DNA from: Klebsormidium nitens
Taxonomy: Eukaryota > Plantae > Klebsormidiophyceae
Direction of reading: 5' to 3'
Length of the DNA: 64,000 nt
Assembly: GCA_000708835.1 (NCBI GenBank)
Contig: DF237092.1
Span: 85,365 to 149,364, forward strand
Position 1 is the stretch's first letter; every line of letters begins with the position of its first letter. Positions 1 through 46,024 of the stretch are shown here, piece after piece. The notes beneath the pieces are model-generated. The model saw nothing but the letters and a program-made list of their open reading frames with translations, was not told the origin of the DNA and searched no databases. Both the position numbers and the translations under genes were made by a program.

Positions 1-3000
1 CGAAAATTGCTATCCTGATCCAGTGTCTTATCTCGTGCGGCTTGGATTGTGTTTTCCCTAATCTTTATTTGCCTTCAAGCTTTTCCTTCTAAAAGCTGCT
101 AGGAGCCACTCTAGAGGGTGGAAATCCTAAATGACCTTTGCCTTGTCGCTTGGACTTGTTCGGGGTTTTGTTGAGTATATGTAATGTTGGGCAGCTTGCT
201 TTTGATGCATGGGCCCCCGCATGTGCACGAAGTGCCACAGATGATGTTTGCACAGCTGAAGCCAAAGCTTTTTCGTTCTGACATGATCAGTTTGTTTTCG
301 TTGTGACATGGGCCCGAAAAATACAACTCCTGACGTGACCTGAAATCTTGTATGCAGCCAGACTTCAATCCATCAGTATGCACACGTTCTGCGAAGCACT
401 TTGAGTAGATGCCTTTCCTTCCGGGAGTCACCCAGCCTTGATATATACCCTGCCAGTGTTGCTTATTACTTATATTGAAGCGTCACCTTATATTGTTCTG
501 GTGGCCGTGATGGAAACTAGAGCGGTGCTGTTTCCGGGCCGCCAGCAATGAATGCCGCTCCTGATGTCAAGCTTGTTGAGGCTGCTGAAAGGTGGAGAGC
601 GTGCGCTGAGGTCTTTTATATGTCCTGCTTCGAACACTTGCAGAGATAGATATGCAGACACGGATTTGGTTGAGTCTCTCCTCCGGCGTTCTCTAATTGA
701 ATCGGTTGAGGCTTGTCGCTTGATCGACTATGTTGGTGCTACCTTGAGTTGATCACGCTCTTAGATTTGCGACTATTGCCTGGCTTCCTCGATAGGAGAC
801 TCTTTAAGTAGGTATCTTCAGTTTAGGAGTCAAGTGTCTGGCTGGAGCGCCGGTCGGCCGTGATGGATCATGCTGATGCTCTGTTTCAGTGTGAGAGAAG
901 TCCTCTGCAGAAGCCGGAGTAGGTACTTTTGAGTCCACTCATGCCTTACGGTTCAAAGCACGCCTGCTTTCCAGCGGGTATTGAAGGTTTGAAATCCTAA
1001 AGGCAGTTTGAATACATACATTTGGTTGACATCAACCGGGATGTTGCGTCCTCTCCGCCTCAAACTGATGGGTTGTCTCCTCGGTCCACGCAACGGATGA
1101 TTTCGATGCACCCCCGTTCGGACTGAAGTTCCTGAAGCGATTGCGGGTTTGAGATCTATTTTATTGTTGTGCTTAAGGTCTAAGTCAATCTCCTGTTTCT
1201 GGTTTTTACATAAAACGCAAACGTAGCAACGAAGTACATCCTGAAAAAAAGCCTGGCTAGAATGGCTTTGTTAACGAGGTCACGCACTCATAGATGTACC
1301 TTGGGTCCCAGAAGCCAGGAGCCCAAGAGTGGTTCGTTTTCACTTTGCTTTGCTCTTTCCATGTTAGCTTCCTCTTGTCGCCAAGACCTTTTAAGTATAT
1401 TGCGTGCAGAAGGACATACCATGTCGCTTCCTGGACGTCCTCTTGTCTTCGTTTTCCAGCTTGCTTCCTCTGCTTGTTATATCTCATGCCACTCTTGAAA
1501 CGAGAGGATCGTGTTCCAGCAGAGACACTTCTGGCACCTCCGTTTGCCAGTGGACAAGCGCGTCAACAGCAGAAAGGCATCGATTTAATAAGTGTTCATG
1601 GGTGTGTTATTTCCGATAACATAGCTACCTGACACGCTTGGAAAACCCTGGCTATGACGTTAAGAGAACTGTGGCATCGCTTCAAGACTCATCGAAAACC
1701 AGATCAGAAGCCGGATTTCTGCATCTACCAACCTCCGATTGAAATGTCGATCGATTGCAAGACGGCTCTCTGGTTGCTGAGTTACTTTCTACCGTTGTTT
1801 TTCGAAGCCGTCCGTTTGGATGACTGTGTTCGTTCTCCATCCCTAGTTGCTAAAAACACCGGCGTTGCCCGGACTCTTGCTCTTTTCTGGTCACCCCGCC
1901 CTAATATTTTCGCTGCGGTTGCTTTCGTGTGAGTCACTGTTGGCAAGACTCGATGCTGAAAGTGTCCTGAAAGTCTTCCACTCCTTCCTACTCCGTCATC
2001 TTTCCTCAAACTTCGGGTATGCACTGCTGAAAAGCAGACGGGACTGTGATAATCTGCCGTTATCTCGTTGGGTCGACAACGAATGATTTACGTCCTGATG
2101 ATGCTCGTGAAATTTTTCTCACTCAGAACGAGCACACGTGCTCAAATTTGACGACCCGACCCGATGCCCGACTGAGAGCTGGTTACGCCATTTGTGCGAA
2201 GCGGTTGCTTGGCACAGACCAGCCCAGGATACCCTGCGCATGTTTTCTAGATCTGAAACTTGATGGTCGAGTCTCTCCCCTCCCCTCCCTTCTTGGTGCG
2301 CATGCTGTTCCATGGCAGCTCTTTAAAGACCCACCGAATCACTTCTTACGGTTCACTCGTTTTCTCGAGGTTTGAGCGAAAGGATTGTACCTCCGGCTAT
2401 GACGTCCTGCGAAGTCTTGCAAACAGGTTGCAACCAGACAGTTGCTCAAACAATTGGCTCAGCTGTTCAGCCCGTCAACTAAGCGCCCTGCTGCGGGTTA
2501 TGCTCGACATGTATGCAACGTAGGCGCCGCTAGTACATTAGTCCTTGCGCTTGGCTCTGTTGCAAGGTGCCAGTGATATTATCCTTGATGCTGAAGCCAG
2601 GATTGGTCGACACGTCCAGTGGCCTTTGCACTCGCCCTGTTCGTCTATGTCTCCTTAGCATGGTCACAACTTGCACTTTCAAGCTTCTTATGTTCCTCCG
2701 AATTCCCCACGTTCTGCAGTATGTCGAGGTCATCCCCAAGCTTGTTGCTTAAAGCAATGTTTGGAGGTGACATCCCCTGGCGTTTTGCCTTGGATCGGGT
2801 CTGCAAAGGACTGCAGCCGTGACCAACTAAAACCTTGAGGTTCCGGCCTCATCAAGCTTGCGACCATTCAGAAGCTGTTGCCAACGCGCTCGGATTGCCT
2901 AGCCAGGAAGTAACTCGATATGGAGCCTTGTAGCAGAGTGTTTGTTACATCGCGTCTTGTTTTCGAGCTTTTCGACCTTTGACTCGTTTTTCTAAAAGGT

Positions 3001-3965
3001 GCACAACTTTTTCCACAGTGGACGAAGTTAAGACTTTGAGCCGGTCTGGCCATGATGCGGAGCACTGCGCGACACTGTCGCATGGGGGTCTTTTGCGCCC
3101 GCTTTGAGGCCGTCCATTCCGGTTCTTCCCCTTAGATTGAGTCCTGTCCAGAAATCTGCATCGCAGGCCGTGATGGATCATGCTGAAGCTTTGCTTCAAG
3201 AAGTCATTGCTTGTCTCTGAAGCCGGAATATGCTGAGCTCGGCGCATGCCTTGGGGTTCACGCAAGTTGGTCAATACAAGAACACAACGGACGTAGATTT
3301 TAAAGGAGTTGTCCGAAGGTGCGGTGTTTGCTTGCCACTGCTTAATAGACGCGCTTCCTCCGCTTCAAGTTGCTGTTCACCTTTTTGCGAACGAGCGAAG
3401 CTTACGCATCCTTCGCTCAGGTGTTGCCTCCTCAAGCGACCGTCGATGCACGAGCTTGAATATGTGTTAGGGCTAGGTTCTTGAAGTTCAGGTGTCCTTC
3501 ACTTCCTTCCCCTCTTATCAAGCAGAATCCTGAGCCCAACGAAGTAGGCCCAACAATAGGGCTGGCTCGGATGGCTGTGTTGACGAAAGTTTTTGTCACT
3601 TAACGGCTTTCTTTCAGGTTTTCGGAAGCCAGCCTCCTCGTTGGCATGCTGAAAGCTCTCCTTTCAACTTGTGCTTCGTTATGTCTTTCCTTATGTCTAC
3701 GAGGCTTTCAATTATCCCCCCCCCGAAAGCGGATTTGCTTTCGGACGTCCTCTTGCACTACTGTTTCGATACGCTTCCGTCCTTATAACAAGTCAATCGC
3801 ATCTTCCAATGAAAAGCATTGTCCTCCAGGAGAGCATATGGTTTGCAGGTTGGTATCAGACCACCAGTCCCTGCATCTCATTCTTTCCTTACCTCTGGCC
3901 TGGAGTTGCATTTATTCATACGTGCATTTTCGATCACGCAGCTACTCGGCTCCGCTTGAAAAACT

Positions 3966-4026
3966 CAACCGGCTATGATGTTGTCTGGCATTGCAGCGTT
4001 GCCTCAGGCTTCTCAGAAGCTGGTTG
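3966..4026 (+). ncRNA. Candidate K-turn/C-D-like stem-loop element
   Basis: CAACCGGC-T-ATGATG...CAGA-A-GCTGGTTG: 8-bp terminal stem; internal GGCA/TGCC hairpin. Confidence 0.4.
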
Positions 4027-4890
4027 CACATATCTGTTGATCTTGAAATAATCGATCCGGCGTCTATGGATGCTAGGTCGAAGTGTGCTGCTGTTGACCG
4101 AAGACGTCCGGACGAGGTTGTGTATCCTTTCTCCATGATGACCATGTGAAAGAAACGGCCGGTTTTCCTTCCGGGTACACCGCCCTGTTCCCTCGCTGTG
4201 CTCAATTCTCTGACGACCAGATCCGATGCTAGATCCTCTTCAAAGATATTCTGCTGCCATCGTCTTCCCTTGAACTTCGGTACCTTCTGCTGAACGTTGA
4301 CGGGGTTCTAGGTGTTCCGCCGTCAACTTGCAGTTAAGCAACAGAATCTGCTAGGGTCAGTGCGCGTCTACTTTCCCTCAAACATACTTGACGAGCATAC
4401 AGTGGGTAAAGAGAGGACTTTACCACATACTGACCGCAAACTTGAGTGCTGTCGGGCTCCGCCGTCCGGGCAAACTTGCGAAGCTGGACGTTGTATGAAG
4501 ACCAGCCCAACCTTTGTAGATCAAGCTACGCTGTGCTATCTGCGTCAGACTCGAGCACTGATTGCTGAGAGCTTCTCTAACTGTATTTGGTGTATTCCCA
4601 CCCTGCCTGATGCGCATGTTGGCCTAGGGCCTCTTTTATACATCACCGAAACGGTATTCTTTCAATCAGCTTGTGTCTGAGTCCTGGTCGAAGTGGTTGC
4701 ATTGATTTCAGAACCCGGTGTAAGCGTCATAAATTGGTCTTTGGCACCTTTGCTTGGGCTTCTCGGAATTCGCGACCGAGTAGACTTTCAATCAGTCGGC
4801 TGCTGTCCTGTCCGTTCATCTACCGCCCCGTCTTTTCGTTGCCTGACACGCACTTAATGTAGGTGGCGCTTCCAGAAAGAAGTTGTGCGC

Positions 4891-4960
4891 TTGGCGATGA
4901 CAGTGCCACGTGTATCAGTACTGCCACGTGTTGATTGACTGGGGATACTTCTGAAGCCAA
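4891..4960 (+). ncRNA. Candidate K-turn/C-D-like stem-loop element
   Basis: TTGGC-G-ATGACA...CTGA-A-GCCAA: perfect 5-bp terminal stem. Confidence 0.35.
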
Positions 4961-6360: not shown

Positions 6361-6434
6361 CTGAGGCCGTGACAACATAAGCTGGCTTACCATAAAGCCA
6401 GCAGAGCGGTGGTAGAGCACCTGACGCCACTCAG
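6361..6434 (+). ncRNA. Candidate K-turn/C-D-like stem-loop element
   Basis: CTGAGGC-C-GTGACA...CTGA-C-GCCACTCAG; internal 8-bp hairpin GCTGGCTT/AAGCCAGC (6381-6402). Confidence 0.4.
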
Positions 6435-6865: not shown

Positions 6866-6929
6866 CAGGCTGTGATGCAGAAATGCTTGGGAATTTTTCC
6901 TAGTGCAGGGGATGGAGTCTGACAGCCTG
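6866..6929 (+). ncRNA. Candidate K-turn/C-D-like stem-loop element
   Basis: CAGGCT-GTGATG...CTGA-C-AGCCTG: perfect 6-bp terminal stem; internal TGGGAA/TTCCTA hairpin. Confidence 0.42.
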
Positions 6930-7216: not shown

Positions 7217-7280
7217 GGCTGTGATGAGAATTGCCTTGGCGTGGTTGTCAAGGACTTTCGTTTGCGTCATTCTCTGAGCC
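7217..7280 (+). ncRNA. Candidate canonical box C/D (K-turn) element
   Basis: GGC-T-GTGATGA (exact box C, 7221-7227)...CTGA (box D, 7274-7277)-GCC; stem II extended by AGAAT/ATTCT; internal 7-bp hairpin CCTTGGC/GTCAAGG. Confidence 0.45.
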
Positions 7281-7531: not shown

Positions 7532-10500
7532 GTAAAGAACACAAAGCCCCGGGCATCAAATTGGCGTACGGCTAAGAAGGACGGAAGCTCGTCCGGGGGT
7601 GACTCCGACCAGGGCACCTGGACCCCCCACGGCGAGGCAGGCTTTCCGATCCAGCCGGGGGTGACCGGGATCGAGCTGAGCAAGAAGCGGCTGGTGTTCA
7701 TGCTGGAGGACGGGCGGCTGATTGAGCGCTTCTTGAGCGGGGCCCAGGTGAGCTTTTTGTTGTTGTCAAGCGCCTTTTAGGGGTCTTGTAGATGCACATC
7801 AAGAAGGTCGGAAGGGTCAAAGTGTCCAAGCATGGGCTAGAGAAGAATTCTCATATTTCGGCTAATTTGAGTGGCCCGTCTCTTCTGCGTGGATCAAACT
7901 ACTTGGAAGCTGCAAGAGGTGCAGGGAAACGAAGTGCGATATATAAGCGGTTTTGCCCTGGCCAAAATACGGTCTCGATTGGCCGACCATCCAGTCATGT
8001 TAGGTCGATAGAGAAGTTGCGAGAAGTCCTTCGACGCCTTTCTTGCGCTTTCTTTGGCAGAGCAACCATGATTGGACTTTGCATGCGCTTGTCTGCAATT
8101 GCAGTGGAACACTCTCGGAAATCTGGTTGCAGGCCGAAACCTGGCTATCGCCTTTTTGAGTTACAGCGGTCGAAGGACATGCGAAGCCGGAGTATGGTTT
8201 TATGCCTGAGTTCGATCAAGTCGTAGGTGTGCCGGGCAAATGAGACATCAGCATTGTTTGTCGACGTTTTTCGAGCTCCTTTGAAGCGTGTCAGCAACGC
8301 GTCCTGGGGCTCTTGCTGCTTTCCAATTCTCTTCGACCTCACCACGATCTCAGGAGCGAGGAAAGATCCGAACAACGTCCAGAGTAGAGAGAGACGACAT
8401 TTTGAAGAGTACTCCTGAATGGCACCTCCGTTTCTCTCTCTCCACAGGTCAACGAAGGGTGGCCCAGCGACGCCTTTTGGATCATCGTGGAAGTCCCGGA
8501 GAGCGAGGGCGGGAACGCCGAGTACTGCTCCAAGGAGCGGGGGCCCTCAAATTGCTTAGACGGGGTCAAAGGACGCCTGGTAAAGACCCCCCCGCCACAG
8601 CAGCGGCAGGCCGGGGGGGGCAGGCAGTCCCCCCAGAACGCGAAGAAACGGACGGACATGCTCACTGGAACCGACGGGTCAGGGCCTGGGTTAGCGGCTG
8701 ACCAGAGTGAGTTAGGGTCTGACGACCCGGAGTTAGAGTACGATGATGAGGACGAGGAAGAAGATGAGGAAGTGGTTACGGAAAAGACGGGAGGGTTTGG
8801 GGGGCCGGTGGAAAGGGGTTGGGAAGAGATTGGAGGGGGGGAGAAGGTGTGCCAGAGGGGCGAGCTGTCGGGCCGGGGGATCCAGTGCAAGCGGGTTCCG
8901 AAAAGGTGAGGGAATGAGGAAGCTTTTCGTTCTTGTGTTTCTCAAGGTGAGACCAAAGAAATTGCGGCTATGTTTCTCAGGGTAAGAGCAGAGAAACCGC
9001 GGCTATGGATTGCAGGAAGAAGTCTCAACGGTCTTAGTGAAGCAACGTCTAAAAGGATGTCCGGACAAGCGGTCAATGTTTCCTGCACTATCTTGAGTGA
9101 TGACCCCCCCTCGAGCGCGGCACTGAGAGCTTGCCAGGATCTTTTCCAAGAATAGCAGTCTACAGTAGCATACTTGCCTTCGCGTCTGGCATCAAGCCCT
9201 GATGAGTGCACGTTTGTAAGCCTCGTATCTCGTCAGTCCTGATCCGCCCAGTCTCCAGGCAACCGTTCAAGCACTAGGCCAAACAGACAATCAGCCTCTG
9301 AACAAGTTGCAAACATTTTTCTGGACATTTGGTCAATTCACACGAGCTTGACGCGGGCTCCTCTGCAGGGCCGAATTCGAAGAAGTGTCCATTTCCGCTA
9401 TGGGGGGGCTGGGAAGTGTCAACCAGGCCGGAGGAAGCACCCCCCCGAAACAGGCGTGGAAGGATGCGTTCCAATTGCGGAGCAATCCGACTACTGGAAC
9501 GGTATACCTGGTCGGGAAAGATGGGCGGATTGCGGAAAAGCGATGGAAGAACGGGGCGTGGAGTTGGAGGACAGAAGACGACCCACAGTAAGCCCGCTGG
9601 AGCATTTTCAAATGTTTGTTGGTAACATTTGAATCTGTGTGCTTTTGACCTCTTAAAACGATTCCATTTGGATTGCCTGCGAAGTCGCTTCGTGGGCACG
9701 GCTAAAGAAAGTCTTTCGTTCTTAGGCAACAATCTCAAGACTGCGTGGCGATGCTAAAGATTTGTTTAAAAGCCAGGGCGATGAGGTGTTTTTCGTATCA
9801 TGTTGCGGGTGGTGCACGCCTCGAAAAGACCTTGTGACGCTTTGACTCGGAACCTCAAAGTTGCAAGACTTGTGTTTCCTGAGACGTCGTCATTATCACT
9901 TCAGCCGCAAGTCCGAGTTCGGCCAGTGCTGGAAAAGTGTTTGAGCTCACTTGCATCAATGTCGCAGCTAGGATTGGAACCAGCGAGTCGGGCGCTTTGG
10001 CTGAGCACCGCACACCGCAGATTGAGTCAGCATGACGCTGCTAGGATTCACGATGATCAATAACGAGCGTATTCAAGATCTCAGGACGATACCGAGTACG
10101 AAGTTCAACTTACCGTGTTCTGGGTCAGTCTGCACTGCTGGTGTGGTTGCTCCAAACGGTTCTACGGGGTATCTCCGCTCGACTATGCGGAAAAGGAGAA
10201 ATCTCAAAAGATGCCGCTTGCTTTGTCCGCTAAGTGTCAAGGGCCTCAATCTGAATTGTCTGGTCGGGTGTTGACGACTTTTCCGAAAGAACTCGTGCAA
10301 GCGACCGAAACTGGTGCTTTTACCGCCAAAACAGCTCCCCTCTGTTCCTGGGGTTCGCAAGTCTGCTTGTGTAGATTCGGGCGGGCTCATTAGTATACGA
10401 CAAAACGATCGTATCACTTCATGTCTTCAAACTGCTGTATCGATGTGTATCGATGCTGTTTTATTCAGCAGATTGCGAACCGACACGTGCCAGGCTTTCA

Positions 10501-13500
10501 GTGGCTGTGATGCCAATCTGCATTTGGGCGCGCTTGCCCAATGCTTGCCCAATATTGAGCTTTTTCCATTCAGAAGCCGCAGCCTTTTCGTCCTAAAGTT
10601 GTAACGCTATGAATGTTACGCGAAACTCGTCCTCCACTTATGGCTGCGTCCTTGTATTGTGCCTTTATGAGAACAAAACGCGCCGCACCCTCAAGTAGTG
10701 TGAGCTCTTTCTCTTGTACACTGAGCGTGGCGCTCGAAACATCGGTAGGCAGTGCATTTCCATCGCTCCTTCGTCTCTTCCATCTCGTCCAAGTTTTCTC
10801 TCAACTGTTCGTCTGCATCTCGTCCTAAAAGCCCTCGAGCTCTTAGATAACGTCCGGCCAAAACAGCGAACTTGCAGTAAGCTTCAGTTACAAACTTCAA
10901 ATCTCGAGCAATGATGCTGAAGTGGAAGCCGACGTGGGGCGTCTCTTAGCTTATGTCCCAAAAGGCCATCCGTTCCATCCTGACGTTGCATCCTGGTGTT
11001 TTTAAAACGAACTATTCGTCTGGTCAAACAAAGTACGGTCGATGCGCATCTTTCACGAGGTTATTGCTCCCGAGGTAGCCTGGATCGGTTACACTTGACA
11101 AATTATGAGGGGATCCCAAGGCTTACATGCTTAGAGTTTGCGAGTTGCCCACATTTATTACGCCCTCCTCCTCTATTGCAACGCTCTGTAAGGAAGAAAA
11201 GAAACATGCCCGGACGCCGTTTCTTGTAGGAAGCTTGCGACACCGCACAGGTTGTGCACTTCAGTGGTTGCTTTGGAACCTTCTAACAGTAAGTGCTGCT
11301 TGTTCTGTCGTTTGGGGCATCTGGGAACTCTATGGCGCTGGCAACGGCCGTGATGCTAGATGAACGTGGGGGGTGCAAACAAATTTCCCCACAACCACTC
11401 TCCGTGTGTTTGATGCCATAGCCACTCTGTGTCAAGCCTTGGGAAACCTTGATTGTCGATTGCATCTTCGCTGGGAGCGCAGAATTCTTTTGCCTTCCTC
11501 CCGACCAGCTGACACGATCCTGATCTGTCCTTTGCATTCCATATGAAAGCTTGGTCCTGGGTTCGAGCTTTCGTACCCTTGAAAGCGAAACTTACGTCCG
11601 AAGTGCTAAGGGTGATTGTCAGCATCCCTGCCATTCCTTTTCTGTTGCCGTGGCCGACTCATTTTTGAGACCTACCTGAACCATTTGAGATTAGGCACCA
11701 TGGTGAACGTTCACATGGTTGATGCGCAAGCAGGGACGCAGTCCGACCTCCCAAGGAAAGGCCTCTCGCAGGTTGTTTTAGGCTGACAGAAAGCCCACAA
11801 GTGCATCCATTTGGTATGGTCGTAGCTCCGCTTGCCACTAGCCCCGGGCTTGATTCACACGTTATGCGCTTCAAAGCATGGATGTGGTCTGACTTTTGGT
11901 TTCTTGCGAGAGATGACGTCTTGGGGACGCCTCAAAACGGGCCAGGATGCGGCAGATGCTGAGGTCAAGATCCTCATGATGTAGCTTGGCGAAATGCTGA
12001 CGCCATAGTTTCACTTCTACGGAAAGCCCAAGGCAAAGCGGTGTCCTTGTCAAGTGGCAGAAAATAAGGTGTCCGTTTGTATGAGGGGGAACCGCCTGTC
12101 CTTGTTCGGGCCTCATCTTTCAAAGTCTTGCGAAGCGATCCGATGTCAAGTCGTCAATTTTTTGTAAGTCCGACGGGAGATGACTCTTGCACTTCATGTC
12201 TCTTGAATGTCCGATGATTGGGGCGCAAGCGGACGTCTGCTCCGTTACATTAAGGCGGTGATGTTAATAGTGACGCTGGGAGGGTCTCTGACCCGTTCAG
12301 ATCTTCTCTCTCGACTGAAGCCACATTTATATAATTTCGACTCCTATAACTAACTTGTGAAAGGCACAACGCTTCCGTTTTGTAAGTTGTGCTGACCCTG
12401 CAAAGGAAGGGTGAGCTCAAGATTCGCTTTCGGATCTTTTCAACGGAGGAGACTCGGTTTCTGGGTTGCACTAATTGGGAACGCTTGCAGTTCAAGAGGC
12501 ATAAGCTCTTCCTTGCGACAATTGTAACCGCAATCTCGTCTTAAATAAACATTGCCAGCTTGTAGTGAGAAAGAGCACTTTGACAGCGCCCACGATTAAG
12601 AGGGACGCTAGCTGGAGCTTTATATCGAAGGCAAGGACTCAGTAGTGAGTTGCTTCATGAAACAATACGCAACAGTGTTTTTAGCGGACCCCACTGCAAA
12701 CTGTTTGCTTGTTGCTGCTGAATTTGCACTTTCCTATAATACTGCTCATGGCGGAATCGTCTTCCGAAGCGCATCTGCATCTGAGGCGAAGACCGTCGTT
12801 TACGTTAATGAGAGGCACGTGTAAGTCAGGCAAACGAGCAAGGATGTGACCGGAGCCTTGGGGCATTCCTTAGGCGTCAGTAATCTCCCGCCGCGACACT
12901 GACTGGCTGGTGCGTACACTCCGCCGTGCAGATTCCGAGTGGTGCTTGAGGGCTTTCTTGATTCGACCCGCTTTATGTGATGCTTGTTCCCTTCTTTCGT
13001 CGTTTGCTCGTTTCTTGATGAAGGAGGGGCCTCGATGCCCCTTTTCGCTGGGCTTTCTCCGCAGCTGCGCAACGTCGGATCGGACTTGTCAACGAGGGGG
13101 GTACCGTTAGGAAAGCTGGCCGCGGCACTTTGCAACGTCTTCAGGCACGGTGCCTACTGTAGTCCGTTGGTTGCTATCAATCAAACTACAAACTCAGAAC
13201 TGCTGTCGTGCTGAGTTATCTCATGGGTCGACACAGCGGCACATTGAAGCAATAGAATCTGCACATTCTGACTGGCGGACGTAAAGGGAAGCGGCCGCGC
13301 ACTCTGCAATTCCGTTGTCCGTTGTTTGGTGAAGAGCAGAATGTAGATCACAATCAACGTACATCACGATTAATGTAGATAACAATCAATCCCCCCAGAT
13401 ACCTCTTTCTTCACGAGATGACCGCCAAGTTGATTGGGATTCGTTGCCGGTTTTGGTGTAAATGGATTTGAAAGTGATGGTGTGGAAAAAGCAAATGGTA

Positions 13501-27128: not shown

Positions 27129-27258
27129 TCAGTTTGCTCCACGTGGGTCCCCTGGGCTGTCAAACGCTTTGAACAATTCCTGAATATCCCTCAAGTTGAA
27201 GCAAAGAGCGAAGGGGTCCACTGAAAGATTAAGTTGCCGGATGTGGACCGCATAGAAG

Positions 27259-27332
27259 GGCTGGCTGTGATGGGATGCTCGCAGAGGCCCTGCTTCAATC
27301 ATCAGGAAGATTGTCCGTTGCGGAAGCCGGCC
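27259..27332 (+). ncRNA. Candidate K-turn-like stem-loop element
   Basis: GGCTGGC-T-GTGATG...CGGA-A-GCCGGCC: 7-bp terminal stem. Confidence 0.38.
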
Positions 27333-30300: not shown

Positions 30301-33300
30301 CAAAGTTTTCTTCTGTTTGAGGTGCTGCTGCGCGCGCAATTGCACTTTGCTGTGTGCACCGAAATGACGAAGAAAAAGAAGGCCGGGATGCTACTGAGCG
30401 TCATGACGAGGCTATGCCTCAATAGGCGATCCATGTAGACAATGCTGACAAGCCAGTCGGTAAGTGGACCCATTAACATGTGCCGACAACGTTCTCTTTT
30501 GGAACCTAAACCGTTTCCTCTTCTACTCTCCCATTACCTTGACCCAGTACTCCAATAATCGTTGGCAGCAAAAAGGTCAACGCGCTTGGCAAAAGTCCTC
30601 GTTTGACGCGCTTGGCAAAAGTCCTCGTTTGCATGTTGGTCAGGCAAACCCGACCGCACAACTCAGGGTATGATATACACCTGTTTCTGTTTGGGCATGT
30701 GGGCACCTACTTATCTGCTTCTATGCTGAGCTTTCTGTACAGGACGTGTACCAGCGTAAGCGAGAATCTGCAGAACGCCTTTGTAGCCGAGCGGGTTGCA
30801 TCGGCGGCCTCGTATGTGAAAGACTAGGCATCATCTTCTTAGCCCGGGCAAGCCCTTTGCTATCACACTGTTTAGGGCGGGTGATCACCATCCTGAAATT
30901 TTGGTATATGCATGTCCAGTCTGCTACAGTCCCATGATTTTAGAGAGAATTGCACCTCGTCAGACGGATGTCTCATTTGGTTTGCTTCTGCACAATGAAA
31001 TCTTCCCCTGCGCTTCTCTCTCTTAGGTTCTTCCCTTAAGGCACGTTGTGTCCGAGCGAATCACTTTGAAGATTGCACACGGCAGCAAAATTCATTTGCG
31101 TTCAGTCCTCTTTCTGTTACGCCATGCACCTGATACCGTCGCCGATGACCTCAATCTATTTTGGTAACTGCCCTTAAAATACAAACTCCGACTTTTGTGT
31201 AGTTTGCGCGCTGTATTGGGTCGCGTCCGTTGAAAGCTCGTCTACTTCCGTGTTCTCAGGGGACGTGCTTCTGAAGTCTGTGGCTGTGACGTGAAACAGC
31301 GCTCTGCACGTATTTGCAGATAGGAGGTTGAAGCGTTTTATTCTACTGATGCCAAGAAGTTATGACTTACAAAAGCTAGCCATAATACCATCGTGCCATG
31401 TGATCATATCCATGTAATTATTGGATGATGGCACAAAACCTGCAAGTGGGCATTGATTCGAAGAAAGCTGAACCTTCGGCCCAGATGTTTTTCCTCCTTT
31501 TTCCTCCGCTTTCAAGAGCTGGTGCGAGGTATTCTCTGTAAACCGCTTTAGACACACTCTGCAACATCTAAGCGCTTGGCGGTTTTTATGTTTTCGTCCC
31601 CCTTTCGGAGGTCAAGGAGTCCTCCTCATTCTGGTCCCGAAAGAAGTCCGCAACAGTATCCAGGTCATAGTTGCTTTTCGTAGAAAACAACGAATGTGCC
31701 AACTCGGGTGTGGGTCACAAGGCGGTGATTCCTGCGATATGCTTCAGCCATTTGCTTGGCAACCCACACTCCAGGTCTGAGCCGGATTGAGCCGGATTCT
31801 TCCATCGGTTGCCCCTGCCACGATAAAAGTGGACTCTTTATTAACCAGGGCCCGGGCTTATTGTTGGTTCAGATATTATTTGTTGGAATTAGCAAGTTTC
31901 TTTCAATCCTGGATGCGCTCTTCCTTTCGTTCCTGACTGTGCAAGTGTTTCGACCTGAGAATGTGCTGAAAGAATCCAAAGTTGGTGTATCATCAGGGTA
32001 GCAAATGAGAAGGCCCGTCATCAATTTCCATTGCCGATCCATCCGTTTCAGGCGAAGCCGCGTTTCGATTATTCGGAGTGGCAACCCACCCGTCTGCAAA
32101 TCATAAGCCAAGATGTCGCGCTTTCACGCTCTGAATGAAGACCCACCGCCAGTCGTAGACTTGGTCCCATTGCTTTACCAGGGTATGTATGCCGGGTCAT
32201 GTTCAACGCTCCATTTGTTTCCGGTCCCCTGTTTATCTCCCTTTTGCTTTTGCTTTCTGCTTTACGATGGGACTTTCTATTCGTGTTTTTTTTGGACTTT
32301 CTTCTGACCGTGATTTGATTGCGGCCATAGAGCGGAATGTGACAGAAGTCTCTCTTTCGAGGAGGTCAATAAGTTATTTTTCATTACGTGCTTTCATCCT
32401 TGGCCAGACGAAGTCTCTGTAGAGATTTCTATCGGATAACGTGTTCCGCTAAAGTGTGCAAGGCAACTTGGCAACGAAGGATGTCCGCTCCGCGGGCTCG
32501 ACACTTCTCAGATTGTGGACGACTTTCTCAGCAGAGCCTGCCACACACATTCATTTTTGGATTTTTCAAGTAAGCACCGCTTAGTACGCTTTTGGAAGCC
32601 GCTGACTGCGGTCAGTTGGGGAATCGATATCGTACGCAGCAAAGCAGCGGGTTGTCACCTCTGCGGGTGGGCTAGCTTGCTCGAAACCCGGATGTCAAAT
32701 ATTAACAGCTTGATTTCAGGACAGCTTTTCTTAAGTTGGCAAGTACGAGGAGTCCATAGTAGGCCCCTCTGCGTTCAGGGGGCGTGAAACTCTGATCCAA
32801 TCGTAAGCGGTCAAGCAGGACGCATTTACGGATCTTTTAAGTTAGCTGGAGGATTGTGCAAGGGGGATGTGTTGTAAACGTTGACGTGGTGCAGACGTTT
32901 TGTCCTGCCAAAACGTGCCAACTTGAAGGTGCAATTCAGACAAAATTCTGTACATACGTAGAAAGATTCCGATATCATATTGCCTTACCGGTGAAGCTTT
33001 GGACCTCGGGTTTGAAAAGCATCACCGAAACAAGTCAGAAACTTGCCTCTCACTTGACGGTATTTCCGAGACCCTCCCACGGGTTGGATCCGAGTCAAGC
33101 CTTGTCGCGCAGACAATCTAGGCTGATCTGCTACTGGTAGAAATCAAAGGCTGCTGAACAAAGCTTTTCAAATGCACCAGATGGGCAGAGGGTACATGCG
33201 TGTTTGGCTGTGAGAAAACTCAGGATGAGGATCTCGGCGCCTCATCACGGTCCGTCGAGAGCCATGCAATTAAGCAACGTCGGCGTTCAAACATAACAGT

Positions 33301-36497: not shown

Positions 36498-37970
36498 TTC
36501 GAAGAGCGCACAGTCACACTCAACCCCGGCCCTTGTGAGTGACCATTCTCGTGGTCGCATTTTCAGGAGTCTTTAAGGACATAGATGAGCGCTCAAAGGA
36601 CATAGGTGAGCGCTCAGCGGCCGAAATTGCAATGCGCGTACGTCTGGCGATGTTTGCCTTGTTGCGTCTGGAATCGCTGTAGACAGCCGTATTTTGCCCG
36701 TATTTCAAATCGCTGGCCCTTCCCTTAGCTTCACCGGGACTTTCCCAAAGATCGATCCAACTTCAATGTCTGTTGAACGTCGAGGACCTCATTCTGCTCC
36801 GATAAGGAGGCACGCGCTCTGCTGATGACGTGCAAAGGAGCGTGCCAGGCCTAGTGGGCGGTTCAAGGATTTTGGCTAAACACCAATCCAAAAGGTCGCT
36901 AGCGGGGCAGATTGGCTCTGTTCACCACATGGGTGTCCACGCATTAGCTGCTCGTCTGAAGCCAGTTTCCTTGCGGACGCAGCACAGTGTGTTCCTCCCT
37001 TACCTCAGAAATCAGTCTCCTTTGGTTTTTGCATTCCGGCGTTGACATTTTCGTTCTCTCTGCGGCTTACATCGTTCCCCTCCTTTTGCTGAGATTGGTC
37101 ATCTCCATAGTCTCTAGAAATGGTTTGGCTCGCAGTGTCGCCACTTTCGGATGCGGCTCCTGACACTTTTCTCGTGTTGTCCGAGAAATACCAAGTCTGA
37201 TATAATGTTAAGCGACGTCGATGAATGTCCTCTCTGGTATGATCGAGGTCGTACCGTTAATCCTGGCCGTGACGCACCAAAGCAAAGAGGTCGTGCCCGA
37301 CCCTCAAAGCTCACCACCCTTGTTGCAATCTGAAGCCATGAAGTCGGCAATTTGGAAGTGCGGCTGCTTTACGATCACACAAAGATCTGTTTCATTGCAA
37401 GCCTCCGCAATGTATGTTGATCACCTGAGCTGGTTGGTCACTTTCAAATCAAACAAGGTGCCCAAAGTGGGTACAGTGAACCAAATTCTTTGATTGTCGA
37501 TACAGACGCCAGCCCGGGTTCTAAGCCACGTGGCTGATTCTCTTTTACGGCTGGTAAAAAAACGAAAAATTCACGTCGCTGCCCCTTCTCGGCAATTCAA
37601 CGGCTTTTCTCCATTGGGCCATTGTTTTAGAATCCAGTGGACTGTACGTCGGGAAGAGTCTGCCCGTTCAACATCTGCGCCACGCTAGGAACTTGCAAAC
37701 AAGCGTGTCTGGTCGTTGCGATCATCAGTTTTGATGAGTACCCCATCGAAGATTACGGGGACAACACCAGAAGGCTCCATAGGCCGTGATGGGGACTGCA
37801 CGTTGAGCGGGCTGAGCCTCACACGTCGGCAGATTGTTCCGTCTGACTAATCCTAAGCTCGTCTTAGCTATTCCTTCTAGTCAATCTTGATTACCTTGCC
37901 GGCAAGTCTGGATCAAGGATAACGTTCTGCGCACCAGCCCAGAAGATAATTCGCTTAAATCTTTGAATGA

Positions 37971-38054
37971 TACGGCTGTGATGCCTGCCAAACTATAGTA
38001 CGCTTGTTGCCACTTCAGTGGTAAACGCCATACTTCAGGACGTCTGAAGCCGTA
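37971..38054 (+). ncRNA. Candidate K-turn/C-D-like stem-loop element
   Basis: TACGGC-T-GTGATG...CTGA-A-GCCGTA: perfect 6-bp terminal stem; internal TTGCCAC/GTGGTAA hairpin. Confidence 0.42.
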
Positions 38055-40137
38055 CGAGATGGCGGTCCAAGTTAGCAGTCCTGCCACGTGTTTGTTGTAA
38101 GGCCGTTTCCGGGGACGGTCGGGGTTGTTTAGGTCGTACGAAGATACGAAAGGGCAGAGACCTCAGTTGTCTATCCCTGATTATGCAAGAGTCTGCAAAA
38201 TATTCTCAGAAGTGACGGATTTTAAATGCAAGTGTAACTTGTCTTGACCACGACGAAGAAACTCCTTTCGAAATTTCGACTTGTCTGCGCGGTAGCGTCT
38301 CCATCCGACTGACTGTCCATGCATTGATCGTTTGCAACCAGAAAGGTCTTGGCTTGTTTTCGAAGCTTTCTGCTTGTTTTCTACACAATCTTTGAATCTA
38401 ACAAGGACTCGCCGGCGTTTCCATCGGTTGTTCGTCATTACGATTTTCGCATCCAATACCCGGAATACTTGAAAGCTTGTGGTCACTGTCCGTCTTCAAG
38501 TTATCCTAGCCAAATTTAACTAGCTTTGGGGAAAGCTTCCAACGTACCCATCCTTTATATGCAGATTATGAAAGGCAATGAAAAGCGTCTGCTTTTTGCT
38601 GGGCTTGCCAGTACTTCTTGGTCCGCACAAATTCTCCCAGAGACCACCGAGCCTGCCAGCCACTTTGAAACGACTCGTCGTAAGCAAGCGGCGGAAACCA
38701 GCTTTCAAAGTCGCTCACTGCGCGTGTATATAGTGCCTTTAGAAACCTTGAAAAGGGCATACGTGGCAGTACGGAGGCTTACAAGAGGGGGCCCCGTCCG
38801 CGGGTTCTCTTGCCCGGCTCAAAGCCGTGCGTGCGTTAGATGTTTTGCCGCGCTGGCGTGGTAGCTTTGCGTTTTCTCACGACTTCGAAGAGGAGATGGC
38901 GGGATGCTATTGCGCTGATGAAGTGCGCCTCAGCACATTGAAATGATGCTGAAAGCGCGGTTGTTTTACAAATGTTCTACACGTTTATTTACATGTCAAA
39001 GACATGCACTCTCTTCGTCACCTTTTCCTCTCATCCTTCGTTTCTTTGCAGGCAAAAAATCCCAACTAATAAGGCCGCTTATGGACCCGCAGCAGCCCAG
39101 GTGGAATGTGTTCGACTCTAATTCTGCACAACTTACTCAAAGGTGGTTGCAAGCCGAATCTAATGATCGCCCACCAAGGGTCCTCTCGTTTCTGTTTTGG
39201 CATTGGGCACTCTCAATCCTTACTTTACTCCGTTGCTGAGTTGTCTGCCAAGGACGTATTCAATGCGAAGTCTTTTGGATTCAACTCGGAGTCAAGCTAT
39301 TTGTATCATGCTGCGTCGTACGTGTAACCCGTTCCGAAACTTCGTATCGTCGTCAAAGTCATGTTTCACCCAATCGACCCTGTTCAGATCACATGATTAT
39401 GTCGAAAGCAGGCTCTGCTTACGGGCTTTGCACCACAAGTTTGCAGCGCCTATTAATCAAGCTGTCATGTACCGTGTCATGTTTTCAGCGTCAGCTTAAA
39501 GGACGGCTGTCCTTTCCACTGCCCTTTTTCCCTGGCTTTGCCCCTCTAAGTTTGGTGGCTTGAAATATCTCCACGAAAGAGCTCCAGTTCCTTTTCCTGA
39601 TGTCAGCGGAAGCGAATCCGGAACAGACCGCGTGAGTATCTGCGCATGCGCGTGACTACGACCATTGTGCGGGGCACGAAGTAAAGACGTGTCAGGCCAT
39701 CCTGACTCTCTTGTCATCCTACTAGGAAGTTATAGCTTAATTCCGCCTGGTCGCGAATGGGCTATGCGTTTCTCTCTGTCTTGCTTTGATCACTGCTGAC
39801 TCGCCCTAGCTTGAAAACCAAGTAAAATGGTGAGAGGAAAGCGTGAAAAGAAAAATTTTAACGGTTCAGCATCGTCGGTAATCATCTGACTTCCAAAGGT
39901 ATGCTAGCCAGCGTTCTGTCTGTGGTTCAACGTGCCAACAAAAGCCTGTGTTTTTGTTGCAGGCTCGTTAGGTTAGCGCAGAGAAAGTGCGGTGGCTTGG
40001 CGGCGGCTCTGCGTTTGTGTCACGACACCACGATTCACATTAACTGCAACCGCTCAAAGGACAGGATCATACTCTGAACCCTCTGCATCGTGCTTTATCT
40101 TCTTCAAATCACTCGGAACCAGATATGCGCCATCCGA

Positions 40138-40203
40138 GTGGCCGTGATGCAATTTACTGCGTTGGGCCGTTGAAGGCCCAGCTAAGCAGGGACCCGAAGC
40201 CAC
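40138..40203 (+). ncRNA. Candidate K-turn-like stem-loop element
   Basis: GTGGC-C-GTGATG...CCGA-A-GCCAC; internal TGGGCC/GGCCCA hairpin. Confidence 0.4.
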
Positions 40204-43200
40204 GTCATTTGTAACTTCCTGGATGCATGCAGCAAAGCCCTGCCGCCTGTTTGGTGCGAAGCACACGACCGACGTATAAATACCCTTGCAGCCTTGATAA
40301 CCTTGAAGCTTATGGCTGCGCTGTGTCCGTTGATTTCTTTTTGATCTCTCTATCAAAATGCAAAACAGCTGCCGTCCGCGTCGGCTTGTCCTGAAACAAA
40401 ACCTGAACCTGTTGCACTTCTTCGGTTTCGGTCGTCGGTATCAGCGGGCTCAGAAGTTCACCGATAGCATAGCATAGCATAGCCTTCAAGCTGCTCGATT
40501 GGTTTTGGCGAACAGTAAAAGAGGTCTCAATAAGTGGATATTACTGCGGTGTATATACCCAAAATTGCCTCCTCCGGGCCGCAGTGCACCCGGCGAAACG
40601 GTTTTCGTTTGTATGGGCGGCGAAGAGTGCATTTCCTCTTCCGCAGTCATTCGATTAAGATGGGCCAGACAAGCTTCTCATCTTGGTACATGAGCGCTCG
40701 AAGGATATTACTGTATCGTCCACCGTCTAACAGAAACACTACTGCTTTCGATCTTATTTGCCTTCTTTGTTTTGAGCAAAATGGCAATGATGAGCACCAA
40801 AACTGACCGCCAGTGCTGGCAGGTCAAAGGTAGGGGTGTGTATCCAACAGCCAGCGGACTATAGAAAGACTTAAAAGACCGGAAGGAATTGAAAGGCTTG
40901 AAAGCCTTGCTGTAATTTCGAATACGTACGTAATCATGTTGAGGGCTTTCGATTGCGGTTGTGAGGGAACACAACATGAGAGCTTCTCACATTCGTTGTT
41001 GTTGCATTGCCTCTAAACTGTCGCTAGCTTCAGAGAGCGCACAATTCTATGTGGGTGATATATCTTGCCTTCCTGGCTCTTTAGAAGACAGCCGGCCGCT
41101 GAGTAGACGCGATCTGCGTGCGCTTCTGACGCTTTTGCGTCTTCCCCGCCTTTTCAATTGAGACACCTTTCACGAGGACGTTTCGCACACTTCGTCAGAT
41201 GTATCACAACGTCAAAACGCCCTGTCACAGATTGGAGCCGCTGAATCTATCGTCTCATCTTCTGGGCGATCAAACGGCGCCGCTTCAATAAGCCTGGCAG
41301 TTATGTGTGCGACGCAAACCTTTGAGCTGCTCGTGGGCGCTTCAGTATCCTCTTATTTGGGCGCTCCCTCCTCTCAGCAAAAGTGGCGAAGCCCCTGTGC
41401 CCAAGTCCAGTTCTTGCGGATAACTTCTACGAACCAGCTCTGAACGATAGGCCTGGATTAGCTGGCGCGAGCTTTACGAGCAGCCGTGGAGTAACCTCGC
41501 CCAGGTTCATCTCGAGATCTTTGTCGGTTCTAGAGCCGGGCAGCCGGGACATGTTTCCGCTGCCAGGTCTTTCCGGGTCTCCATCGCCAATAGAGACGAT
41601 TATGTGGATTTGTACTTTGGATAACTTACCCGTCGGGCGTGGAAAAGCTGTGAGAATTGTCTAGACGACGCTCCGTCTCATCAGCGTTTCCGGGTTTCGG
41701 ACGCTGCTTCCCCCGATGTGCCCCAAGGACTTTGGCGTGTCAGCAGATTTTCCCTTCCTGGTAAACTGTCTCATTTTGAAGTAAGCGACGTCTCAGCGTC
41801 GAAACGAGCTTGCTCCTCATCAAATTACGATCTTGCGACAATTGGTGTAGGCCTTTCTTCGACCACTGTCTGGGACTGAAACGGAAAAACCCTGAATACA
41901 CGAATGTATCGTTGAAAGAGGAGCTGCGGCTTGCGTCATCTTTGTCTCTTCGCGCACATCTTGTGATTGCATAACCATCTGAGCTACTCGCGTTCCCACC
42001 ACGTTTTCATGCGCCTGCCAACACCATCTGAAATCCATCAAAGTCTGTTCTTCTATAGCGCAACTTCTCTACGTAGATCTCTCCTTGAAGGTGAAGTTGT
42101 ACGATGACTTTTGGCCGTGAAGCTGCAAAGCAATAAAGTCATGCGGGTCCCTTACACTTTGACCCGGACCATGCTTGTTGCAATCACTAGAAGCCATGTA
42201 GATATCGTTTTTTGAGATTTTTGGTTCTGGGCTCACCCAAAGATGCATTACTGTGTCTAAACACACTTCCCACAATTTATCTGACAAATCCGCCCATTCT
42301 TCACGTATGCAATCTCTATATACTGCCCAAGTAGCTGTAAGGTGCCGGTAGACTGATCTCCTTGATCACCCAGACGCCGGCCCCGGATTGCCATCCGTGG
42401 ACCTCGGTAATAATATTGGTCCACATCGGTGGCCCCTACTTGAGAGTCAACGATTATTTATCGTCGCTGAGCCATCTTCATGCATTTCGGAGCGTCGAAA
42501 CGACGGTCTGCTCTGTGAAAGTTTGCGCACCGCCGATAACATGCAGAACAAAGCGTCAAAAAGATTGGTATGCATTTACTTTGAGGAGCCACGGCGGGAA
42601 AGCAGCTAGCTGGCCGTGATGGAGATCGAACGTCGGGGCACGCACCTGAGCGCCATTTGCCTTCTTGACCGCTCCTGAAGCTGGTTTGAGCCTTTCTTTT
42701 TTGCCGTTTACTGAATCTCGTCATTCTCTTGATCCAAACGGATCCGAGTCCTTGCAGCCCGCAAGGACTCGGAATTCCTCTCCAATCAGTCGAGCAGCCT
42801 TGTGACGGAAGTGACTTTCGGGTCCGAACGTTTTGGTGAGCGTCGACAAAACGTTGCGGCTGACGAAACCCATCTAATTGGGCTACACGGTGCGGCCGCC
42901 TGATTCTGCTTATTCAAGGCAAATCCGATCTACATGCTTCTATGATATTTGTGAACGAGTAGCTCAGCGTTCTCAGGTACCACAATCTCAATCGTCCCTG
43001 ACGACTATTCACGCCTAATAAGTATTAATCTACGGGTCGCTAAGGAACATTCTGAAGATACTTTCCTACAGACAAGCCATGGGCTCAGGTTGAAGGTTCT
43101 GAAGTGCGGCTGGGACGAGCCACAGCGGGGTCTTGCCTTCTTCCGCTTCAATGCCCTTTTGGGCAGTGTTTGTTTGCAAATGGATCGAACGCCCGCTTGA

Positions 43201-44983
43201 TTTTGCACTAGAAGCACGCAATCGTACCCCTGATCATGGGCTCCTGTGAGCTGCGAGCTCATGCTAAGCAAGTGATGCAGAGACCTCGTCCGTTTCGTTA
43301 GATGTCAATGCTTAATGCAACTAGGTCTTGGGAGCGGCTCGTTATTCATGAAGGTCCGGTTTGTATGTATCAATCGCACTGCGCAGACACCCCCGGGGAT
43401 GGCCGGAACTGTGTTTGCCTGGGGGCAAACAGCCAAAGTCAAAGACAGTACAAAGTGTCTGTGCCATTTCGGAGTCTCCACGCGCCTTGATTCATTTCAG
43501 CGCAAACTTTGATCACGCAAGTGCCCATTGAAAGTTTCTACTTCTACCCTAAAACGTCCGCGCCTTCGACCAGTGCGGTACTTTCGCGGCCGGGTTTGTC
43601 AGTTGCCGCTTTTAACATAGGCCAAGGTTTGTTCGTACTTTGTTCTGCTTTTATGCTGAAGCAGAGACGCTGTTATACTGGCATCAAGTTGAAGTCTCGC
43701 TCCAAGGTGGAGCAAGGAAGTGCCTATAAATCATCCTTGAAGCCAGCCCAAAATGCACGACGTCGAAGTGAATCGTCCCAGCGTATTGACAGGAACAATA
43801 CTGTCTAAGCCGATTCGGTTGAGCTCACTGATCCTTGTTCAAGGACTGAAATATAGAGATTGCAAAAAAGCACAAAGAGGATTCTCTGACTGCGCCAGAT
43901 GATATTCAGCGCTCTGTGCTCTGAGCTCGTGCAGTAAAAACCCTGATGATTAGTGCCGATTCGCCCACGCTCCTGAAAAAGGTACTTTGAAGAATACGTA
44001 CATCAAGAAATCTCTCACTGATAGTCTGCTTCTTCGTTGTTCAGAACGACGGCCGCCCTCGCAGAACGTTACTGAGCAAGCCGAGTGCCCTTCAATCGAA
44101 TACGTGACGGCCCGATCGTTCTGGCTACACCTGCATTTCTCAGGCAAACGGAAGCGTTCTCACTGAGACAGATCAAAGCCCGTCAACTTCTTTTACCGAC
44201 TGCTGGACAGCTGTGGGCTCTCAAACAAAACTCATTGAGTCGGACAACTTTTCTGTAGGGGTTCGCGGCCGCGCAACAAGCAGCCGTCGCTGCGCGAGCG
44301 CGCGAGAGTATTCACCTGGTTCTAAAGTTCGTCCTGACAATTACAAACACATCGCCTTGTATTTTGACGCCTCTTTGGATTTGCCAACTATCATCAGCAG
44401 GAGGCGGGATCCGCATATAAATGATCGTCTTACGTCCACAGCTTGAAAGGCTGAACCACATTACCAGATTGCTAAGTCCTGACCAACTCTGCGTGCTACT
44501 TTGTTCTCGTCATTGGGAGCAACATCTGCGTTTGTCTGCAAGCTGTCAGAGCTACGTCTCTCGAGGGGCGGAGTACTGGGGACATTGCATGTTCAAAACA
44601 GAATCTTCCCATACTGGTTCGATTTCGGGCAAACGTTCGTGATTCGACAATCTTGCAAAAACAAAATAACCACGGAGCGCTAGCGAAAGCCCGCGTTCTG
44701 TAACAGATTTTCAGTAGATCTAAGCGGCTCCACATAAGTTTTGAACAAGCAGATATGCGTGCCAGTATCCCGTGAACAGGAATTTGAAGCACCGGTTTGG
44801 CAACAGTCTGAAATTCATCCTTGCTGAGACGCCCAGTCGGGCGCCCAGCTAATTTGTTGCCCGTTTGTTGCACGAACTGCTCTCGGGCGTCGCTGAGATG
44901 ATGCGAGTCAGCAGTAAAACTTGCCTAGAGATCCGTGGCTCATGCTCCGTGTAAAGCACTGTATCATCCTGGCCGTTTCGCAA

Positions 44984-45067
44984 ACTGCCGTGAAGCTTTG
45001 TTCCCACTTTGTCCTTGAGATGTGCTCAACGGAGTCGCGCTCACGGAAAGTCGACCTCTGAGGCAGT
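44984..45067 (+). ncRNA. Candidate K-turn/C-D-like stem-loop element
   Basis: ACTGC-C-GTGAAG...CTGA-G-GCAGT (stem sequence differs from other copies but still pairs); internal TTGAG/CTCAA hairpin. Confidence 0.38.
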
Positions 45068-46024
45068 GGGCCGTTGCTGATCGACAGATCCATATCGCGA
45101 ACGATCGTACCCTTGAGACGGGTGCATATCTTGCAAATGGAAAATTGCAAAGCCGTAGATTAGGTAAACAGGTTCCGTTCGGTTGGCTTGGAAGGGAAAG
45201 CCTCACTAGGCGTTCGGAGATTCAGACAAGTGCATGTGCACCTACCGCGGGACGCTTTCGCAGTACCGTCCATGTTCCATTTCGGGCGCCTCGAAAAGAC
45301 GGTGGTTCAAGTCGAGCACGGCTATGATGCATGTCATGATGGGACGCAATCTGCTGCACTGGCCGAGTGGTAGTACAGTGCATCTTGCGGTCCTCGCTAA
45401 AGCTCCGCTAGTGATATACGAAGAGGCATTTTCATGAGATTTGGGGGGCCGACTGCAGCTCCGGGGCTTCGAAAGTCTCCACGAGGTGGCTGTCACAATC
45501 GGAAAACAGCTGTGTCCTGCTTTTACGCTCAAGATCGCGCTTGTTCGGCTTGACCCACCGCTTGAGTGAAGCCAATCGTTTGCTTTCGGCGTACAATGCG
45601 ATGCCCAGACATTTATGGGTGTGCCACCTGCTCTTTGATTCAAACTCGGCATATCATATTGAAACCATTTCGAAGAAAGTTAAATCGACTAACCTGACTG
45701 ATCAATAAATCGCGCACCATGATGTATTACAAATCCTAGCCTGCAACCTGGCACACCCCAAAAGGCGCATTGCAGTTGGTGCGCATACGGTCATGCATGC
45801 GTTCTAGCCCGGCGGGTGGCGTATACGGTTTCATGCAACAGCTAGGCGAATTACGTGTTCCAGCAAATGATACATGAGTTTCTTGATCGATCCAAGTCAA
45901 TGCTTCTCTAAAACTCGACCGACGCAGCTTAAAAGCAACTTCATTGCGGCCCCTAGCTAATTACATGCACGGCAGATGTTGCTCAGTCTATTGGCGTAAC
46001 CTTTGTCACTTGTTACTTAGTAGC

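Follow-up and report, generated by a model that had tools for sequence, protein, structure and literature searches.

A single-strand array of candidate box C/D-type small RNA genes in the streptophyte alga Klebsormidium nitens

The 64,000-nt stretch analysed here (the window) is taken from Klebsormidium nitens (assembly GCA_000708835.1, contig DF237092.1, positions 85,365 to 149,364 of the forward strand) and carries, from position 498 to position 45409, an array of short stem-closed units that resemble box C/D small nucleolar RNAs (snoRNAs). This array is a real feature of the DNA, and we found no published description of such arrays in K. nitens. The only recognised gene, for ribosomal protein S3Ae (eS1), lies on the plus strand at about 57.8-62 kb, 12 kb past the array. 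The units have a median spacing of about 500 nt, and the array may continue upstream of the window. The positions below come from a covariance model, R1, which is described further on; firm units score at least 16.6 bits.

498 to 45409, plus strand: the full array, with about 60 box C/D-like units of which at least 50 are firm
Firm unit starts 1-12, plus strand: 498, 851, 1645, 2810, 3043, 3161, 3559, 3966, 4888, 5156, 6043, 10498
Firm unit starts 13-24, plus strand: 11341, 11935, 12249, 13548, 13671, 13796, 13916, 14063, 14208, 15354, 15927, 16251
Firm unit starts 25-36, plus strand: 17169, 17924, 18882, 19006, 19908, 20417, 23067, 25655, 25832, 26410, 26938, 27258
Firm unit starts 37-50, plus strand: 29703, 30109, 31277, 33627, 33873, 34430, 36425, 37260, 37969, 40135, 41641, 42108, 42607, 44981
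Weaker candidate starts, plus strand: 1250, 5393, 6360, 6863, 7212, 14339, 14804, 29319, 35934, 37777, 45315

Evidence for the array comes from the excess of its motifs and their confinement to one strand. A preliminary description of this DNA had listed 22 plus-strand copies of the 10-mer GGCHGTGATG and had seen no reverse-complement copy. All 22 positions were recovered exactly, together with one extra copy at 52310, also on the plus strand, and the minus strand of the window has none. These 23 copies compare with a mean of 0.42 in dinucleotide shuffles of the window and a highest shuffle count of 2. The shorter form GC.GTGATG occurs 27 times on the plus strand and once on the minus strand, and the partner motif CTGA.GCC is equally polarised (22 and 1). 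The copy at 52310 lacks a box D partner and was rejected as a unit. The same description held that YUGA, CAGA or CCGA usually follows downstream and is separated by one nucleotide from a sequence complementary to the 5' flank. A descriptor of this pattern (R-UGAUG after one free nucleotide and a stem, with the stem complement after a downstream GA and one nucleotide) recovered it, with 19 sites on the plus strand against 4 on the minus strand and 3.5 in shuffles when the stem had at least 4 bp. A looser core descriptor (GC-N-NNGA ... GA-N-GC plus at least one further pair) gave 78 sites on the plus strand, 29 on the minus strand and 22.9 in shuffles, an excess of about 50. The seven stems offered as examples are all correct at their coordinates (6866-6929, 37971-38054, 40138-40203, 16254-16329, 27259-27332, 3966-4026 and 44984-45067), and most of the copies that had been obtained by relaxing the first box were found again by descriptor or covariance model.

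The covariance model R1, built from an alignment of 46 clear units (A2) and run without filters on both strands of the window, delimits the array. Its first minus-strand match (E = 0.83) is preceded by 59 plus-strand matches, 13 of which lie outside the training set. Fifty units reach at least 16.6 bits, every one of them on the plus strand and between 498 and 45070; the best minus-strand site in the window reaches 11.6 bits, above which matches are confined to the plus strand. As a negative control we ran R1 on 255 kb of unrelated eukaryotic ribosomal DNA (rDNA) contigs, where no match exceeded 15 bits.

The 46 aligned units share one anatomy. They are 55-90 nt long and read, from the 5' end, as a variable stem of 0-5 bp, an invariant GGC, one nucleotide, box C (GUGAUG), about 10 nt, a hairpin, about 15-20 nt, box D (C/U-U/A-G-A), one nucleotide, an invariant GCC and the 3' half of the stem. 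The median distances are 10 nt from box C to the hairpin and 15 nt from the hairpin to box D, and the hairpin has a median of 7.5 bp (5-9 bp). The purine of box C is G in 35 units and A in 9, followed by U in 40; after the GA, which the descriptor requires, U stands in 31 units and then G in 39. Box D starts with C (38) or U (8), continues with U (28) or A (10) and ends in GA. As in snoRNAs, a box C (RUGAUGA) is found near the 5' end and a box D (CUGA) near the 3' end, with a deviation at position 7 of box C. Opposing the two boxes gives fixed tandem G.A/A.G pairs, then U.U in 21 of the 46 units, then G-C or G.U in 39, a series that is, judged from the sequence, the signature of a box C/D kink-turn. 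The kink-turn of the preliminary description is supported by this signature of the motif pair; it would not be a canonical one, since box D and the stem are separated by an extra nucleotide, which gives a predicted variant with a 3+1 loop and a fixed GGC/GCC clamp. The internal hairpin, likewise announced earlier, was found in the majority of units. Its sequence, supposed to be unrelated from one unit to another, is partly shared: UGAGG...CCUCA is frequent in it, and 13 of 46 interiors contain CCUCA (1.6 expected). UGA often stands at its start; a clear CUGA or AUGAUG is found in few units (11935, 3161), and the C' box is missing from most.

The stems were said to vary in sequence and yet to remain paired, and they do. 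We tested pairing over the terminal stem and four inner pairs, with partner shuffles (n = 500) and a slid partner as controls: 68.8% of the cells pair, against 59.3% in partner shuffles (0/500 reach the observed value) and 31-45% with a slid partner. The covariation score is 0.325 against 0.19, with double changes at six pairs. The three innermost stem pairs are imposed by the selection of units and the outer five are not; stem pairs 4-6 each lie above the shuffles (p = 0.0005, 0.008 and 0.02). Helix 2, above the GA quartet, is only 59% paired.

The history of the array can be read from its internal repeats. In self-BLAST of the window every match is direct, 33-563 nt long and centred on units, with none inverted, and repeats lie again and again about 2.3 kb, 2.6 kb or 4.0 kb apart. 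Two blocks stand out.

760 to 2000, plus strand: three-unit block with syntenic paralogues at 3070-4310 and 29226-30466 (three-way alignment)
10900 to 12330, plus strand: block of several units with a second copy at 14800-16330 (matching offsets of about 3.9-4.0 kb for repeat families D15, D17 and D19)

The three copies of the first block agree in their three unit types and in the order of these, with identity only in the units and a few short islands, the spacers being unalignable. As this comparison is independent of the motif search, it is unbiased evidence that the units are constrained while the surrounding DNA drifts. In the three blocks, pairs of invariant islands about 190 nt apart lie between units (at about 941-953/1128-1140, 3246-3258/3428-3440 and 29406-29418/29576-29588) and are mutually complementary, UGCCUUGGGG with CCUCAAGCG; they may represent another kind of structured RNA within the array. 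Individual units that illustrate the relations between copies, or the range of stems, boxes and scores, are the following.

851 to 920, plus strand: unit with paralogues at 3161-3229 and 29319-29392; 5' half 86-91% identical across copies, flanks unrelated
3559 to 3635, plus strand: unit with 8-bp terminal stem (descriptor, R1 27.7 bits, block alignment); paralogues at 1250-1321 and 29703-29776
3966 to 4026, plus strand: unit with box C AUGAUG and 8-bp stem (R1 29.6 bits); paralogues at 1645-1717 and 30109-30180
10498 to 10583, plus strand: unit with CAGA box D (R1 38.2 bits; fold)
11341 to 11422, plus strand: family B unit; paralogues at 15354-15435 and 17924-18008
11935 to 12009, plus strand: unit in which internal D' (CUGA) and C' (AUGAUG) boxes are clearly readable in the sequence; paralogue at 15927-15997
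13548 to 14289, plus strand: six family A units in head-to-tail tandem, with a period of 123-147 nt (Tandem Repeats Finder, alignment A1, consensus fold A3)
16251 to 16332, plus strand: unit with stem GUGGC/GCCAC (R1 26.9 bits)
17169 to 17254, plus strand: dispersed family A unit (R1 45.7 bits)
19006 to 19088, plus strand: family A unit, best-scoring of all (R1 46.8 bits); neighbour unit at 18882-18962
25655 to 25717, plus strand: short unit (R1 34.7 bits); tandem paralogue at 25832-25894
27258 to 27333, plus strand: unit with 7-bp stem (R1 32.0 bits)
37260 to 37342, plus strand: unit whose pre-box-D segment is common to 42108-42200 (pairwise alignment)
37969 to 38056, plus strand: unit with 6-bp stem (fold z-score -3.06; R1 32.5 bits)
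40135 to 40206, plus strand: unit with CCGA box D (R1 28.7 bits)
42607 to 42687, plus strand: unit with 7-bp stem (R1 34.2 bits)
44981 to 45070, plus strand: last firm unit of the array, stem ACUGC/GCAGU (R1 16.7 bits)

Interiors are unique by BLAST in 49 of 61 units, and the alignable copies differ in what they keep. The short unit at 25655 belongs to a longer tandem match (25578-25729 with 25756-25906, 76% identity). Pairwise alignment of the family B copies shows the post-box-C segment and the hairpin kept and the pre-box-D segment unrelated; between the units at 37260 and 42108, CUUGUUGCAAU is kept before box D and the hairpin differs. In older paralogues generally, the segment after box C tends to stay and the one before box D is replaced. 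Recent change is best seen in the six head-to-tail family A copies.

Box/stem scaffold and hairpin, six family A copies: identity 0.82-0.89
Inter-unit spacers, six family A copies: identity 0.54-0.74
First internal single-stranded segment, six family A copies: identity 0.44
Second internal single-stranded segment, six family A copies: identity 0.30

The would-be guide segments, with identities below those of the spacers, thus change faster than the spacers do. Since the sample is small and the alignment gapped, diversifying selection on these guide-like segments is put forward as a possibility. The best-supported reading of the alignments is that the array grew by repeated tandem duplication, in which the scaffold was kept and the putative antisense segments were turned over quickly.

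On sequence grounds, we consider it probable that about 50-60 genes for box C/D-type small RNAs, all in one orientation, make up 498-45409 and that this array arose by tandem amplification. The array would be copied, in the sense of the plus-strand units, into a long unspliced precursor RNA. The ends of each unit would pair through the invariant GGC/GCC and 0-5 variable pairs, and box C (GUGAUG) would meet box D (YUGA) in a kink-turn, to be bound by Snu13 of the L7Ae family and then by Nop56, Nop58 and fibrillarin. The resulting particle would shield an RNA of 55-90 nt while nucleases trim the spacers, as in the polycistronic snoRNA clusters of plants. The two single-stranded segments sit at the positions of the antisense guides in C/D snoRNAs and may have the same role. 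Protein binding, processing and guide activity are attributed here by family resemblance. Of the three functions suggested in the preliminary description, snoRNA-like or guide-like small RNAs fit this anatomy. Scaffolds compacting long introns find nothing in support, the assembled contigs having no splice joint over 6 kb of the array and no flanking exons being found. Other features of the locus are few: no Pfam domain was found in 12 open reading frames (ORFs) in or overlapping the array region, the only match among 20 ORFs being the S3Ae gene outside it; a transfer RNA scan of the window found none; and the flanks of the units share no promoter or processing signal, TCAAGC-like words showing no strand bias.

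Transcription is suggested weakly by public data. Ten runs from three studies contain parts of 13.0-19.2 kb, and their assembled contigs are colinear with 6 kb of the array (13.2-19.2 kb), in joint-free pieces of up to 2.7 kb that span several units. With about 41-45 Mb of contigs per run and patchy cover in two studies, these assemblies would be more like transcriptomes than genomes.

A number of observations weigh against the array being one of box C/D-type RNA genes. First, the runs are not recorded as RNA, so that the library type is only guessed, and the contigs are strandless. Second, only 9 of the 46 units have A at position 7 of box C. Third, the extra nucleotide that separates box D from the stem is A in half of the units and shows no covariation with the opposite nucleotide, the two being pairable in 17 of 46. 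Fourth, the consensus fold of family A has at least four pairs (a 4-bp helix) running inward from the boxes, and these cover the nucleotides where the box D guide should start. Fifth, a search of the window against Rfam gave zero matches at gathering thresholds and, with E up to 5, none of relevance and none to a SECIS (selenocysteine insertion sequence) family; this blank counts for little, since the snoRNA families of land plants generally cannot be traced to homologues in green algae (PMC5122169). Sixth, complementarity to ribosomal RNA (rRNA) genes, sought as exact 11-13-mers, as best duplexes and in paralogue-conserved segments, is that of the controls. The comparison was made with 120 eukaryotic rDNA loci fetched from metagenomes by a 5.8S pattern, mostly fungal-type by our own reading of the 5.8S signature, a few green-type and none this alga's own. 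The 46 units have three exact 12-mers with these loci, against 1 and 0 in controls, none in guide register, and no complementary 13-mers. Best ungapped duplex scores (G.U allowed) reach 31.8, against 31.8 reversed and 31.0 antisense. Two outlier duplexes were set aside as spurious (they overlap hairpins, in a single locus each). The segments conserved between paralogues give only chance-level 10-mers; one of these, an exact family B 10-mer to a conserved large-subunit site, was discarded as chance (about 12 expected, and no D' box after it). Set against the rest of the window, unit interiors show scattered complementary 12-mers only. Since their single-stranded segments differ in nearly every unit and match no conserved rRNA site, the units count as orphans with respect to conserved rRNA cores. 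They may have targets in lineage-specific parts of rRNA, in the spacers of pre-rRNA, in small nuclear RNAs (snRNAs) or in messenger RNAs (mRNAs).

Among the alternatives, the one that survives best, unlikely as we judge it, is that the units are ordinary methylation guides for the alga's own rRNA, pre-rRNA spacers or snRNAs, whose targets were missed because the alga's sequences were absent from the test set. Architecture and segment lengths fit guides, and the segments kept between old paralogues, CUAGAUGAAC in family B and CUUGUUGCAAU in the 37260/42108 pair, suggest a real target. Against this, methylation sites lie mostly in universally conserved rRNA cores, yet the few 12-mers to the 120 rDNA loci fall outside guide position and the duplex scores match their controls; at least 50 extra guides at one locus would also exceed usual site numbers. 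The lack of match in Rfam is uninformative on this point, algal homologues of land-plant snoRNAs being generally not identifiable (PMC5122169). We hold it to be equally doubtful, and no more than a minor candidate, that the array is a rapidly diversifying library of kink-turn-framed guides, with antisense segments under diversifying selection and non-ribosomal targets. Such a library might direct snoRNP (small nucleolar ribonucleoprotein) binding or 2'-O-methylation to mRNAs, transposon transcripts or other non-coding RNAs.

Less likely again, the units could be protein-binding kink-turn modules with no guide role, acting in a long non-coding RNA as signals for its processing or stability, or as a sink for Snu13 and snoRNP proteins; the snoRNA-ended long RNAs of the mammalian Prader-Willi region offer a likeness. 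The kink-turn, stem and hairpin are all that is kept in a set of largely unique interiors, the design is non-canonical, and long colinear contigs exist, all of which suits such modules; but the interior segments are held near guide-like lengths, some are conserved between old paralogues, and those of recent copies outpace the spacers, which hints at something beyond a simple absence of constraint. A structured retroposon, a short interspersed nuclear element (SINE) or a miniature inverted-repeat transposable element (MITE) family spread by transposition is very improbable. The many copies with conserved termini speak for it, but the firm copies all lie in the same orientation at one locus, as head-to-tail tandems with conserved order inside duplicated blocks. 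There are no terminal inverted repeats beyond the unit's own stem, and the flanks have neither the poly(A) tails nor the target-site duplications by which a SINE or MITE would be recognised. The retroposon proposed in the preliminary description is contradicted by this single orientation and syntenic tandem duplication, and its own argument that the units are not a transposon-like repeat holds, because self-BLAST has no inverted copies and unit order is kept in the duplicated blocks. SECIS-like or other non-snoRNA kink-turn elements, which share the RUGA/GA quartet and closing helix and, in family A, a helix that continues above the quartet, are barely credible given the absence of upstream coding sequence, of a SECIS match in Rfam and, in most units, of the helix above the quartet, and recoding gives no reason for fifty copies in succession.

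As a probable array of box C/D-type RNA genes, the locus has partial counterparts in several lineages. The polycistronic C/D clusters of plants and green algae are alike in their single strand, short spacers, box C/D and terminal stem, and in giving no hint of a promoter for each unit. The clusters of plants and the paralogy within them have been described, with growth by tandem duplication as here, and those itemised contain two to four snoRNAs each with known rRNA targets (PMC5122169). The present array, in contrast, has at least 50 units over 45 kb with interiors almost all unique and no detectable target, and its units have the fixed GGC/GCC clamp and the extra nucleotide after box D. In mammals, copies are near-identical within a family, each in its own intron, whereas in the present array nearly every unit has a different interior and the contigs run without splicing in the 6 kb tested. 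The mammalian SNORD115/116 and SNORD113/114 arrays otherwise resemble this one in having tens of tandem C/D units in one orientation and no rRNA targets, and have been called the only two known mammalian snoRNA gene clusters (PMC2766290). These imprinted arrays sit inside a long non-coding transcription unit, a likeness that rests here on the inferred precursor. The tandemly repeated snoRNA clusters of Euglena and trypanosomatids resemble the array in large tandem amplification and, on the present reading, in polycistronic expression and in new guide specificities by duplication and divergence. Their snoRNAs mostly have mapped rRNA targets, in a heavily modified rRNA, unlike the units here, for which no rRNA match was detected in the mostly fungal-type test loci. 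Archaeal box C/D sRNAs share the compact order of C, about 12 nt, D', loop, C', about 12 nt and D, and the G+C end clamp; the units here are eukaryotic and nuclear, mostly have a plain hairpin in place of C', and have a second segment that is longer and variable in length.

Large orphan box C/D RNA arrays are known mainly from imprinted mammalian loci, where their function is still debated. An independent and far more diverse set in a streptophyte alga near the land-plant lineage would offer a tractable system for orphan snoRNA function and would show how duplication yields new guide specificities. The predicted 3+1 loop with its GGC/GCC clamp would be a testable variant for the rules of Snu13/L7Ae recognition.

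At and past the end of the array, the AT skew changes sign at 44-52 kb (within 44000-56000), and a run of minus-strand ORFs without Pfam match extends over 44.5-47.8 kb; together they may mark a convergent, unrecognised transcription unit bounding the array. At 58808-58876, on the plus strand, lies a unit-like hairpin with a 6-bp stem (GCAAGC/GCUUGC) and boxes GUGAAU and UGGA. It is probably in an S3Ae intron, an S3Ae-like coding stretch upstream ending at about 58570; at 12.6 bits, below the ceiling of the negative control, it is not claimed as an array-type unit. The S3Ae gene has partial copies of its own exons beside them. Exon 61262-61320 has a degenerate partial copy at 61065-61103. The end of a second exon (61422-61465) recurs at 61551-61606 (95%) and 61687-61742 (71%, frame broken), both copies keeping its 5' splice site. 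Between the array and this gene are two tandem repeats, one of 18 nt in 4.2 copies at 46646-46721 and one of 42 nt in 3.3 copies at 50813-50951.

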